From Camelus ferus (lineage: Eukaryota), in contig NC_045708.1 in NCBI RefSeq assembly GCF_009834535.1, positions 5,580,001 to 5,644,000 of the forward strand: a stretch of 64,000 bases of DNA, in the 5' to 3' direction. A program made the translations under genes and the position numbers. The notes beneath the pieces were generated by a model that saw only the letters and a list, made by a program, of their open reading frames with translations, did not search any database and was not told the DNA's origin. Of the stretch, positions 7,015 to 56,939 are shown piece after piece; position 1 is the first letter of the stretch; every line of letters starts with the position of its first letter.

Positions 7015-7218
7015 NNNNNNNNNNNNNNNNNNNNNNNNNNNNNNNNNNNNNNNNNNNNNNNNNNNNNNNNNNNNNNNNNNNNNNNNNNNNNNNNNNNNNN
7101 NNNNNNNNNNNNNNNNNNNNNNNNNNNNNNNNNNNNNNNNNNNNNNNNNNNNNNNNNNNNNNNNNNNNNNNNNNNNNNNNNNNNNNNNNNNNNNNNNNNN
7201 NNNNNNNNNNNNNNNNNN
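7015..7218. other. Assembly gap (204 N)
   Basis: Run of N. Confidence 1.
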
Positions 7219-21182: not shown

Positions 21183-21491
<309 letters not shown>

Positions 21492-22452: not shown

Positions 22453-22599
<147 letters not shown>

Positions 22600-29379: not shown

Positions 29380-29428
29380 CTGATGGCTAGGACCAACACG
29401 AATTTCTCCTTGGGTACTGTTCAGCCTC
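29380..29428 (-). CDS. RERE: RERE internal coding exon (49 nt, phase 2-0), BAH/ELM2 junction
   Basis: Acceptor cag|G, donor CAG|gtaaag; translates (R)RLNSTQGEIRVGPSHQ in frame with its neighbours. Confidence 0.97.
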
Positions 29429-36718: not shown

Positions 36719-36882
36719 NNNNNNNNNNNNNNNNNNNNNNNNNNNNNNNNNNNNNNNNNNNNNNNNNNNNNNNNNNNNNNNNNNNNNNNNNNNNNNNNNN
36801 NNNNNNNNNNNNNNNNNNNNNNNNNNNNNNNNNNNNNNNNNNNNNNNNNNNNNNNNNNNNNNNNNNNNNNNNNNNNNNNNNN
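36719..36882. other. Assembly gap (164 N)
   Basis: Run of N. Confidence 1.
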
Positions 36883-40684: not shown

Positions 40685-40803
40685 GGGGTGGGGGGGGGTG
40701 ATTAGGTCATTTATTTATTATTTTTTAATGGAGGTGCTGGGGATTGAACCCAGGACCTTGTGCAGGCGAAGCATGTGCTCTACCACTGAGCTACACCCTC
40801 CCC
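40685..40803 (-). mobile_element. Vic-1-type SINE
   Basis: Reverse complement reads gggagggtgtagctcagtggtagagcacatgcttcgcctgcacaaggtcctgggttcaatccccagcacctcca plus tail. Confidence 0.92.
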
Positions 40804-42983
40804 TCAAGGAACACTTCAAATGTAAGGATCAACCTCAAATTCTGATTCAAGATGTTGATATAATGACAGGAAAAGCTAATAATAGGATGATATTTGGGGG
40901 AACTTTTACACAGACCCCGGTAGTAACTACATGTCCTCACCATCTCAACAGATGGCTATATGCGAGCCCCACAGATGCACGTCTCATGAGGCCAGGCCAG
41001 CTAGCCAAGCAGGAGGACCCTAGCCAGAGTGGATTCAGCCACAAGAAGAGCTTCCTGATCACATCTGATTTGCTAAATGCAAAAAAAATTGAAGAAGAAT
41101 TGAAGAGAACAACACAAAGGCAGTTCCAGTGTCCTCCTACCAAGTATTCCCCTGACTCAGACAATGGGTTTTCTGAACCGAGTCAGAAACTCGAGTCCTG
41201 CAAGGGTCCCACATGCGCCAGGCCCAGCCCCTCAGTCTAGAGGAAGGGCCCTTCCAGACTCACAGAAGGAGCGGGAAGGAAGAGCAACGGCACTTCCAAG
41301 GGAAGTGAAAGAAGACAAGTTTCAGAAGCAACACTACATGGTACGGGGAGAAGTAAAAGGGGGGATCTGCCCAAAACTTCCAAACGCAATGTTCAAATAT
41401 ACGTGATCATAAGCGGAAGGCAGCCCTGACATGAATGGAGAAAGAGAGCAAAAAACGGTAGGTGATAAAGTGCATTAACCCTAAGTTATCCCTGTAAAGT
41501 CATCTCCTTCATTACAATCCTAAAATTGAACCTGCTAGGAGCCAGATTCTATTTCAGTAATATTTTCACTGGTATAATTCATCATTTGCCTTCCTAAAAA
41601 TTTTCCATCCTGTAAATCAGGGGCCTCCTCTGACAGGAGCTAACCACACACAGCTCCACACTGATACACCACGAAGAGCTCACGTGAAGAATTCCTCCCC
41701 GTACCATCAACGTGCAGTAAAGGTCTTCCCCCACCTATGAGTTTTTCATTTGCACGTTCTTCTGTATTTCATGCTACCTTTTACCCTGACAAATGCGCAA
41801 AACTTAAGTGTCCCTTCAAAATTTGTTCCCAACTTCTATCAGAAGAAAGGGGAGAGGAAACAAAAAGGAACAATTAATACAATTCAAAAACTTCACTTAA
41901 TATCTATTCGGGTAAGAATTCAACTTGTCCTAAATCTGCTTATTATGATCGGCTCCCTAAGTTAACTCCAGTGAGAGCTGTCTGTCTGAGCCCTGTCTGC
42001 AAACAGGACACACAAAAAAGCATAACCTCCCCTCACAGAAAAGACTGGAGTCCAGTCCCACCAAGCAGAGGGCACAAAACCCGGTCTTGGGAATGCCTCC
42101 ACCTTCTCAGGCATCAACTCCTCCCTTTACTCCTCCCCTACAGAATTCACAAGTCACACAACAAAACAGACATACACAACAAATGCCATCTTTGCTGAAA
42201 CAAACAAAATAAACAAAAACCCTGGAATCTCAACTTCTAACACAAATGTCAATGCACATGTTTCTTTTTTAATTGCCAAGAAAATGTCCATAAGCTCCAA
42301 AAGACAGGATGGACTGCTTCCTTTGGAAGCAATAGAAAATTATGTGACATATAAGTTATCATTTCTTAAAAAAAAAATCCATTTTAAGGTGATACAGTTG
42401 CAACCATAATCCACAACTGTCCCCTGCGTATGTCAAAACGTATGCACCATTTCATTTTCAGACTTCAGAAAAAGAGCACAAGAATTATAATTTGCTCAAG
42501 CAAACAGGCTCTCAATCAAAACAAGTTCCACCCACCTTCAAAGCAACCAATAGCTGCCCACCTACCACCCTTCCTAAACCGTCCAAACAGAGCGGCTCTC
42601 GGCCCGCCGGTCCCACCAGCCACACAGCCAGCCGGCCGGCCAACCTGCGGGCTTGCTCTGCAGGTGCCTGAAGGCCAACAAGCACCAGACACCCAGCGAA
42701 TCCCGGGTTAAAACTGCACCCGGAGAGGAAGAGGTGAGGGGAAGGGGGAGAGGACAGGGACCAGGGGGACCCAGAACGTTCTCCATTTGCTTAATGATCT
42801 CCGAGGAGACCCCACTCTCAGCTCTGATCTCACGCTTCGCGACACCACCGACCAGGCCAGCCAGGGCTGATGCAGGCTCAGAACGAGCACCGGGAATGAT
42901 GGCATGGTTCATAAACATCCTCCGAAGTGAGAAAGGGCAGCGACACCATCACTCTGGAGGTGAGGCCAGAGGAGGGAGCCTAC

Positions 42984-43009
42984 CTGCAGGGGCTGAGCGG
43001 CTCGTCCAT
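42984..43009 (-). CDS. RERE: Coding part of a putative alternative first exon of RERE (MDEPLSPC + phase-2 AG), in frame with exon 29380-29428
   Basis: ATG GAC GAG CCG CTC AGC CCC TGC AG|gtaggc; Kozak gtcATGG (G at -3 and +4); in-frame TAG 24 nt upstream; donor phase 2 matches the 49-nt exon acceptor; CpG-rich context. Confidence 0.78.
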
Positions 43010-43122
43010 GACTAACAGGCTCTGCTGAGTCTAGCTGTGTCCTCGGCTCTCTACTGACTGTGGAAACTCTGCCCTTTTCTACTCTAACAACTCAAAATGG
43101 AGGCACATGCCGTCTGAGAGAC

Positions 43123-43254
43123 NNNNNNNNNNNNNNNNNNNNNNNNNNNNNNNNNNNNNNNNNNNNNNNNNNNNNNNNNNNNNNNNNNNNNNNNNNNNNN
43201 NNNNNNNNNNNNNNNNNNNNNNNNNNNNNNNNNNNNNNNNNNNNNNNNNNNNNN
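43123..43254. other. Assembly gap (132 N) inside the putative intragenic promoter
   Basis: Run of N flanked by GC-rich sequence. Confidence 1.
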
Positions 43255-46200
43255 CAATCTCAGCCCTGCCGTTTCCGTAAATAAAGCCCAGCCGGCAGCC
43301 TCCGCAGCCTCCCGCACACCAAGCTAGTGTGCAGGGAAGTGGGGCCTTGGCAGGGGGATCCAGACAGCCGACCCCGGGCACTCGGCGAGCAGGGCCGTCG
43401 AGAGGCTCGGTCAAGACAACAAGTTTTGTTCTGTCTTTTCTTTTAAAAAAATTAATTATGCTTTTAAATAACAAGATCATCAAGAAAGAACAGAATCAAA
43501 AAGCACAGATATGAATGAGTCTCTGTGAGACTGATTAACAGAAATACTGCAGTATACTTAAAAACACAGCAGTGGCTACTCTAGGGGAGCAACCCCACAC
43601 ATTTGTTTTTGGAGACTTTGACCGTTCGGAAAAGGGCCACAGCAACAGTGCTGGGCAAGTTACGGAGCACTGGGTGTCATCACGGCTACAGACAGGGTGG
43701 AAGGCCCAGCAAGTGGAGTATGCAAATGAAGAACACCGTATTTTATGCAAAGAGCTCAGTCTCCCTTAGATAAGAAGTTCTAAAATCACCTGAATAATAA
43801 ATAAAAATATCTCCTAACTCGATACTAACCCAATCAAGGGTGTGCAGCACAAGTACTGTCCTTCTCACAACAAGAAGCGCAGGAAGGCTCAGATCAGGAG
43901 GTCAGAGAACACCCTGCCACAAACACCCGAGCACCTGACCACCTCAGGGTCGGTCTCGACTCAAAACTCCAGGCAGTTCTTTGTGACGCTGCCCATGAAA
44001 GCTAAATTCATTTCAAATTTAATCAGAAAAGACTTCTAAAGCCACATAAGGAAGACCACACCATCCTGGTCACACTGAGCACCACGAAGTTTTCACACTG
44101 CCCACAGCACCAGCCAGAACATTTTCTGTTAAAAATCCTTAAAAACACGTTTTGTGGCCTCTTCCCCAACCTCTACCTCCAACAGTAGGCAAACTGGGCT
44201 GTCAGCCATGTAAGAAATCCTAGTTCTGCATGTGGACGTCGGCTTAGTTTCCATTTGCAAACTAAGAAATGATTCTACATATGATTACTTAGCTATAATG
44301 TTAAAACAAAAGGAATACCATGAAACTCTCAAAATTTTATAAAGGACAAGAGAGGGTAGGAAGGGGCAGTACCAACTCTGTTTCCCACAAATGTAATGGA
44401 GTGTGAAGAAATTAAACCTGCTTAAAAGAAGATTCAGTGTCCTCAAGATTCCTAAACACAGAACCCATCTCCCTTCCTCAGTGTCCCTGTTTATGCTCTC
44501 AAATAAACTAAATTGAGACTATGATTAAATAATAAAATTTTCATCTTGCTGAAAATGTAATTTACACAAGAAATGCCAAACACAGTTTGGTCAAAGTTTT
44601 ACTTTTGACCCCGCACATGAAGCAAGTGTCTACACATTGGACGACCACCTTACCTATTGCTATCTGAGACATCATGTCCCTAGAAATTTGACTAGAAACA
44701 GTCTAGAGACAAAGACTTTCTAAAAACAAGAGCAGCTGAATTGGAACCTAGCAGCCAAACAGCATAAATATGACCACCAAAATGTTTCCTTCAAAAGTGC
44801 TTTAAAAAAATAAGTAAACCCTTTCACATGTAAATTACTTACTTGGAGAAATCAGCATAAAATAATAATTTTAAAAATTCATCATTACTCTGAAAAACCA
44901 CGGGAGCTGTTCCATGGAACACAGGATACAAACAGTTCTTGTGATGGCAAGTCAAGAAATGTGGACTATAATCTTGGTCCCACAAAATGCCATGAGCAAC
45001 ACTAGGGGCAAGTTACCAACATCCTACGGCCGCATCTCTGGGATACTGGATCCCAGGAGTGAACCCTGCCCATGTCAACACCCTCTTCATTGCCTTTCTT
45101 GACACTGTCAGCCCACAGCTGTCCTTTCCATACCACTTGGACAGGCTTTCCTCCTCCCATGACCCCTCAGGCAGCATACCCCAGGGCTCACTCTTGAGGC
45201 CTCCTCTCTTTCACAATCTCCCGTGTGAAGAAGCCACGCCCTCCTCCAACAAGCTCCTCTCTGGAGACAGCTCTTCACTAGGAGCAGCCTGCACATCTGA
45301 GGGAGAACTCTGTTCTCCTGCTGAACCTTAACTCATCACGCCCTTTGCTGGGGCGCCTCAACTCTCTTAACAGATGCTAAGCTCAAAATACTCTTCACTG
45401 AAGCCACACAAGTCTCTCGTTTTGTACCTCAAAAATATACATAACTGGATGCACTGAGAACGGCACAGTAGCACTCACACATAGTTTACACCTAGAAGGA
45501 TTACATAAGATAATCTAATCGTGAGGAGTATCAACACAACAAATCGAAGAATTTTGGCAAAACTGGCTTCTACTCTTCAAAAATGTTAATATCACAACAA
45601 AACAAACAAACAAACAAAAGGCTAGGAAACATGTTATGAAAACAAAGGATATTAAAGAGATACAACAACTAAACACCAATGCATGACCATAGGGGAAAAA
45701 TCACTATGAAGGTCAGTGTTAGAAAAACTGGCAAAATTTGAATGTGGACTGTATTAGACTATATGGTATTATAGCAACATTAACTTTCCTGATTTTGATA
45801 ACTATACCATAGGTTATGTAAGAGAATGTCTTTGTTCTTGGACATTTAAATATTTAAGGGGAAAGCAACTTGACATCTGCATTTCATTCTCAAATGGTTC
45901 AGGAAAGGAAAATACTATGGAGAGAATAATTAATCAAGGATGGCAAACACAGAGAACATCACGGCAAAACAGATGATCAGCAAATCTGTAGTAAAGTTCA
46001 AAAGGTAACACATAAAGTAAAATCAATACAAATAAAATAATAAAGCAAATACTGGAAAATGTTAACAACTAGTGAACTGGGTGAAAGACACATGAGTTCC
46101 ACGTGCTAAACTTTAACTCTTAGTTATGAATATAAAATTACACGCGGAAAATTTTTAAATATATAAAACAAAAAATACCTGGTAGTAGCCTTCAGCCCTC

Positions 46201-56807: not shown

Positions 56808-56939
<132 letters not shown>

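Follow-up and report, generated by a model that had tools for sequence, protein, structure and literature searches.

RERE (atrophin-2), a dosage-sensitive corepressor acting in development, is responsible for a human neurodevelopmental syndrome and is a candidate gene of the 1p36 deletion. Two forms of this protein are treated in the papers found on RERE, a long one and a short Atrophin-only one; the latter, RERE-S, is an isoform of about 1,012 amino acids (aa) that arises from an internal promoter located farther downstream than the start discussed here (PMC10676324). The ELM2-SANT regions of RERE, MTA and MIER proteins recruit HDAC1/2, and the BAH domain represents a separate module for contacts with chromatin and proteins; the MIER1-3 corepressors are ELM2-SANT scaffolds without BAH, and BAHD1 supplies this domain to them in trans (PMC4777444). 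The present work is devoted to a very short putative first coding exon of RERE (mini-exon), found on the minus strand at positions 43009-42984 of a 64,000-nucleotide (nt) stretch of Camelus ferus DNA (contig NC_045708.1, positions 5,580,001 to 5,644,000). The whole of this stretch is called the window below, and all positions refer to it.

In our opinion, 43009-42984 is very probably orthologous to an alternative first coding exon that is conserved in the RERE of other vertebrates. In transcripts beginning at the mini-exon, the upstream exons would all be left out, and with them the N-terminal region and the complete BAH domain (about 277 residues); the phase-2 donor of the mini-exon would be spliced to the exon at which ELM2 starts. 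The predicted product of about 1,300 residues would carry nine isoform-specific residues at its N-terminus, and the ELM2, SANT, GATA zinc-finger and Atrophin-1 regions after them would be intact. The GC-rich patch around the mini-exon may act as an internal promoter, and the mini-exon is presumably used in this species. Such a product would dock HDAC1/2 via ELM2-SANT without the BAH chromatin-contact module, its layout resembling a MIER-type N-terminus.

A mini-exon in the BAH-ELM2 intron

The exon map of the window was obtained by tblastn with the full-length RERE of Oryx dammah (P0284), after which the splice sites were read. The mini-exon sits between the exon that ends the BAH domain and the one that opens ELM2, and all three are on the minus strand, the strand of the gene. 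The last exon of the BAH domain in full-length RERE was located by tblastn at 56809-56913, and its donor is also in phase 2. It is followed by an intron of 27,380 nt (56808-29429) containing the mini-exon, and then by the first shared exon (29380-29428), which encodes (R)RLNSTQGEIRVGPSHQ, the start of ELM2, and offers its acceptor to the mini-exon and the last BAH exon alike. The next ELM2 exon, AKLPDLQP...MYLRAA(R), at 22454-22578, is 100% identical to database RERE fragments. Two further shared RERE exons on the same strand, ...NALNT at 21306-21405 and another at 558-656, were defined by tblastn together with the reading of their boundaries.

The coding part of the mini-exon (42984-43009) comprises eight codons, counted from the ATG, plus 2 nt (26 nt in total) and encodes MDEPLSPC(R). 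Read directly on the minus strand, it is gtc ATG GAC GAG CCG CTC AGC CCC TGC AG followed by gtaggc, with the ATG at 43009-43007, the final exon base at 42984 and the donor GT at 42983-42982; the 5' splice donor gtaggc as a whole occupies 42978-42983 and is in phase 2. The ATG has G at both -3 and +4. Because an in-frame TAG is present at 43031-43033, 24 nt 5' of this ATG, position 43009 is the first usable in-frame start. The acceptor of the next exon (29428-29380) is a good one, ag/GAGGCTGAAC, and in-frame joining to this exon gives MDEPLSPCR-RLNSTQGEIRVGPSHQ, from which the frame continues into 22578-22454 (AKLPDLQP...). The ATG with its Kozak context, the TAG 24 nt upstream, the phase-2 donor and the next exon at 29380-29428, all of them pointed out in a preliminary description of the window, were confirmed by direct reading; the coordinates, phase and joined peptide given there also proved correct when the mini-exon and the ELM2 exons were read again.

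One other way of using the same sequence, as a cassette exon included after the BAH exon, was ruled out by the two in-frame stops 5' of the ATG, at 43033-43031 and 43081-43079.

According to a simple matrix, the donor of the mini-exon scored 8.6 bits; two genuine donors of RERE exons in the window scored 7.8 and 7.4 bits. In a scan of about 26.5 kb of the intron (56000-29429), the mini-exon ATG was the sole one combining R-3/G+4, an open frame and an equally good phase-2 donor. When the Kozak filter was dropped, three comparable ATG/phase-2 donor arrangements were found in the same scan, which speaks for a chance ATG-to-GT arrangement in a large intron, having no biological meaning. By itself, the anatomy is suggestive and not decisive, and it is homology that lifts the mini-exon above chance.

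Homologous N-termini and transcript evidence in other vertebrates

The search for related starts began with the 41-residue ELM2 exon, which was compared, profile-free, with 1.84 billion representatives. Two fish proteins were obtained that begin with MDDLFSPRR and then continue directly with (R/Q)LNSTQGEIRVGPSHQ. In the follow-up, region-restricted searches with these fish proteins and a gharial protein were carried out, N-termini and cluster members were inspected, and the joined window peptide was searched; the homologue samples are the best 120 of about 600 matches per search.

All the homologous N-termini are joined directly to (R/S/Q)LNSTQGEIRVGPSHQ. In teleosts the peptide is MDDLFSPRR, and 86 proteins among the matches listed begin exactly so; in the frog Ascaphus truei (P0302) it is MDDLFSPCR. 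Turtles have MDDPGSPCR, MDDPISPCR or MDDAVSPFR in isoforms of about 1,282-1,338 aa. The variant MDDPFSPCR was found in crocodilians (Alligator X4, 1,303 aa; Gavialis X4, 1,302 aa), in a bird, the kagu, and in the mammals Mus caroli (X10, XP_029331809.1, 1,301 aa), Arvicanthis niloticus (X9, XP_034357734.1, 1,301 aa), Perognathus (X4, XP_048206136.1, 1,275 aa), Microcebus murinus (X4, XP_012646945.1, 1,290 aa) and Phyllostomus discolor (KAF6111085.1). The length of the mini-exon peptide (9 residues, 26 nt) and the junction are constant everywhere.

In an alignment of 16 vertebrate sequences (A1), residues M1, D2, S6, P7 and R9 are invariant; the window agrees at all five and satisfies the pattern M-D-[DE]-x-x-S-P-x-R. 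The window peptide MDEPLSPCR is identical to the annotated mammalian N-terminus MDDPFSPCR at seven of the nine positions, and the remaining two replacements, D3E and F5L, are both conservative. By a rough binomial estimate, made with no tool, a random 9-mer would match at least six of the eight non-Met residues about once per million, and the mini-exon was therefore regarded as an orthologue and not as a coincidence. Taken together with the same length, the same phase and the orthologous intron, this identity leaves the chance arrangement mentioned above with practically no probability, and such an explanation may be considered effectively ruled out by homology.

Transcript evidence came from fish. 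The protein P0057 originates from the Logan contig L001 (run SRR28040449, 3,779 nt), which contains an unbroken open reading frame (ORF) of 1,187 codons and, since this ORF is uninterrupted, represents a spliced cDNA. After 29 nt of 5' untranslated region (UTR), it reads ATG GAC GAC CTG TTC AGT CCG CGG AG/G AGC CTG AAC, where the slash marks the junction, and so agrees with the mini-exon of the window in the 26-nt length of the coding part, the terminal AG and the phase. The contig begins (L001:1-19) with AGATGTGTATAAGAGACAG, which we take to be the Tn5/Nextera mosaic-end adapter, and therefore does not give the true 5' end of the cDNA.

A regular distribution of these starts was observed in teleosts. 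Among the matches listed, all 76 of the 76 teleost proteins with S or Q after the junction (rereb-like) begin at the mini-exon and 0 of 76 have BAH, and wherever the junction site is internal and BAH precedes it, the protein belongs to the R type (119/119). Several sources name the S/Q type 'arginine-glutamic acid dipeptide (RE) repeats b' (rereb), and many BAH-less fish entries are labelled 'isoform X1', a label that usually denotes the longest isoform. As far as can be judged from these protein sequences, the pattern suggests that one RERE paralogue retained only the internal start after the teleost genome duplication. If this is true, the start is older than the fish-tetrapod split and has its own role, and an ancient, independently maintained start would explain the S/Q versus R pattern. 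In its complete form, the proposal is that the internal start, an ancient functional unit predating the divergence of ray-finned fish and tetrapods, makes a MIER-like HDAC scaffold that lacks BAH and has a role of its own. It is supported by the teleost pattern and by an invariant S-P-x-R in the mini-exon peptide (see below); it is a tentative one, and we regard it as rather improbable.

Some other N-termini were noted during inspection. In ten fish models (P0074, P0077, P0115, P0128, P0131, P0139-P0141, P0145 and P0146), 19-29 residues are added before MDDLFSPRR (...RPLRCVVSTSHIQTS.D-MDDLFSPRR); the corresponding species probably have no in-frame stop in the 5' UTR, and the extension is a predicted one. 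Different N-termini on the same RLNSTQ exon (P0230, P0014, P0276) include the low-complexity start of the Microcebus isoform X3, the start MAHGAVLRCARKLDQLCAPLRPAGM of a fragment of 198 aa, and HDSPFSSVSPV from a UniRef entry of the guinea pig; they may represent additional alternative first exons or artefacts of gene prediction.

The GC-rich patch and the presumed use of the mini-exon

The mini-exon is surrounded by a GC-rich, moderately CpG-enriched patch (42560-43420), a candidate internal promoter. Its GC content is 0.61 and its observed/expected CpG ratio (o/e) is 0.55 (37 CpG in 729 read bases), compared with 0.40 and 0.30 for the whole window, and similar scores were found in a handful of other 400-nt segments of the 64,000 nt. 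By the Gardiner-Garden/Frommer definition, a CpG island extends over at least 200 nt with GC of at least 0.5 and CpG o/e of at least 0.6. The GC content is above this limit across the 729 read bases; the CpG o/e is under 0.6 overall and on the exon side, 3' of an assembly gap (0.50), and above it in the 166 nt 5' of this gap (0.67), the middle 132 nt being unread. We infer that the patch is a weak CpG island and a putative internal promoter. Of the 'CpG-rich island' assumed earlier, the GC-rich part stood and the CpG part turned out to be weak; the island had also been called repeat-free, and the patch is indeed single copy in a comparison confined to the window.

The gap itself (43123-43254, 132 nt) falls in the putative 5' UTR or promoter, outside the ORF, and is separated from the mini-exon ATG by 113 read bases (43122-43010). 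One unbroken read stretch contains the start codon, the two in-frame stops 5' of it, the ORF and the donor. Since the gap lies 5' of the ATG and all coding features are in continuous sequence, no coding claim needs frame or continuity across it; the gap bears only on how far the GC-rich patch extends and where any transcription start lies. Three assembly gaps are present in the window (7015-7218, 36719-36882 and 43123-43254), and the second and third of them adjoin GC-rich, CpG-enriched stretches; GC-rich cores that are difficult to sequence would explain these two gaps.

A short upstream ORF (uORF) with its ATG at 43108 is located on the minus strand at 43079-43108; it comprises 9 codons (MCLHFELLE) and a stop at 43081-43079, and is in frame with the main ATG. 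The uORF is relevant only if transcription begins upstream of it; it then lies in the 5' UTR and might damp translation of the BAH-less isoform.

The place where transcription begins may be considered separately from the coding role of the mini-exon. It could be used after splicing to one or several upstream non-coding exons, with transcription starting elsewhere and the patch not being a promoter, and this would be compatible with its being a conserved first coding exon. A CTCTCAG motif at the gap edge (AG ending at 43114), the polypyrimidine tract of which would fall in the unread gap, and the low CpG o/e of the exon side point in this direction. Nevertheless, no convincing acceptor was seen between the gap and the ATG, and the patch has sharp, AT-rich borders and is centred on the exon, as is expected for a promoter-associated island. 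The 29 nt of 5' UTR in the fish cDNA contig do not settle this question. In our opinion, a start elsewhere is unlikely.

Several facts weigh against the conclusion that 43009-42984 is a conserved first exon in use in this genome. D3E and F5L were found in the window alone among the 16 aligned sequences, the supporting proteins are mostly automatic gene predictions, and the papers found deal with no RERE forms other than the long and the short one. CpG is weakly enriched (o/e 0.50-0.67), and the stretch of the patch likeliest to contain a transcription start falls in the unread gap. Finally, when the 67-residue joined window peptide was searched, the exact start MDEPLSPCR occurred in no protein of the 5.8-billion-sequence collection, and the frog orthologue was retrieved. 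Little weight attaches to the missing exact match: isoforms are merged into clusters at 90%, of which representatives alone were searched, and such fragments are unlikely to be present, given a length filter of 37-117 aa and breaks in the assembly at branch points.

Two lineage-specific replacements, the missing match, the weak CpG enrichment and the in-frame uORF could together indicate a lineage relic, i.e., a mini-exon that is orthologous and intact and is no longer transcribed or translated here. We find this very unlikely in view of the fact that the ATG, the Kozak context, the 26-nt length, the phase, the strong donor and the invariant D2, S6, P7 and R9 are all retained, while both replacements are conservative and the negative search result has little weight for the reasons given above. 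The interpretation of the mini-exon as an alternative first coding exon of RERE is preferred to a relic and to a chance arrangement.

Another element of the same RERE intron is a tRNA-Ala(CGC)-like sequence on the minus strand at 40729-40800, detected with the Rfam tRNA model (46.7 bits; gathering threshold 29) and also called by ARAGORN. A score of 46.7 bits is below the expectation for a working tRNA gene, and this element may be a pseudogene or the head of a tRNA-derived SINE.

The predicted BAH-less product and its relation to described proteins

The domain content of the product was deduced from annotated proteins. In Mus caroli X10, Pfam recognized a complete ELM2 at 18-68 (profile positions 1-53 of 53), SANT/Myb at 126-171, GATA at 239-273 and Atrophin-1 at 300-1300, and no BAH was recognized by Pfam in this protein. 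In the full-length Oryx protein, BAH (104-281) directly precedes ELM2 (286-336), and therefore the alternative start removes everything up to an exon boundary, the N-terminal region and all of BAH, without cutting into ELM2. The combination of ELM2, SANT, GATA and Atrophin-1 without BAH was found in the orthologue P0296 and in the fish protein P0084, SANT being sub-threshold in the fish. In the window, the ELM2 exons follow the mini-exon in frame; only the first four shared exons are covered, and those of SANT, GATA and Atrophin are beyond it. By analogy with the described ELM2-SANT proteins, we infer that the BAH-less form would still recruit HDAC1/2 through its intact ELM2-SANT.

The shared exon at 558-656, which encodes the region just before the SANT domain, has a Ser variant as compared with LIEKCWTEDEV in Mus caroli. 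Among the fetched proteins, this variant occurs only in cetartiodactyls (Bison, Bos mutus, Cervus, Odocoileus, Rangifer, Oryx, Neophocaena and others) and, judging from these sequences, is a lineage marker.

Within the mini-exon peptide, S-P-x-R (A1 columns 6-9) is invariant in the 16 aligned sequences from fish to mammal. At the motif level only, it fits the full CDK-type consensus S/T-P-x-K/R, and its conservation could reflect an isoform-specific phospho-regulation at the extreme N-terminus.

The existence of a BAH-less, ELM2-SANT-intact product, predicted from the DNA of the window, is borne out by public annotation, in which many vertebrates have a form whose first ELM2 exon is directly preceded by a short alternative N-terminus. 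An annotated isoform of about 1,300 aa, the existence of which had been suspected, is real: NCBI lists such forms, of about 1,275-1,305 aa, for rodents, a lemur, crocodilians, turtles and a bird. Thus, the BAH-less isoform is already known in annotation and is not new, the mini-exon call is correct, and for this genome the outcome is the correct annotation of a known isoform. Nothing was found in the searchable literature on the RERE form of about 1,300 aa, its function or the function of rereb, and a literal full-text search for MDEPLSPC gave no paper. The ideas of an ancient functional unit and of S-P-x-R phospho-regulation are present in none of the searchable papers.

From teleosts to mammals the 9-residue N-terminus is conserved, and the BAH-less form is seemingly the only product of one fish paralogue, which argues that this isoform is functional. 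This also concerns the interpretation of variants, since truncating ones in the upstream exons through the BAH exons would spare such an isoform.

The systems closest to this locus are the NCBI RERE isoforms with MDDPFSPCR, in which a 9-residue mini-exon N-terminus is likewise joined to RLNSTQGEIRVGPSHQ, BAH is absent, and ELM2, SANT, GATA and Atrophin-1 are present. They differ in that the window encodes MDEPLSPCR and the full product cannot be assembled from its four shared exons. Teleost rereb (about 1,150-1,260 aa) begins with the homologous mini-exon peptide MDDLFSPRR and has ELM2, GATA and Atrophin without BAH, as confirmed by the spliced contig. In contrast to the isoform discussed here, the BAH-less protein is the only rereb form among the matches listed and not an alternative to a long form, and S or Q stands after the junction instead of R. 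RERE-S also arises from an internal start in the RERE gene and is also devoid of BAH. However, it lacks ELM2, SANT and GATA as well and keeps the Atrophin-1 region only, whereas the BAH-less isoform keeps ELM2-SANT, the docking site for HDAC.

The MIER1-3 corepressors share with the BAH-less isoform an N-terminal layout in which ELM2-SANT is not accompanied by BAH in one chain, and this likeness is a functional analogy only. We know of no partner giving BAH in trans to BAH-less RERE. The two do not belong to the same family, and the rest of the BAH-less isoform, including the GATA finger and the Atrophin-1 region, is that of RERE.

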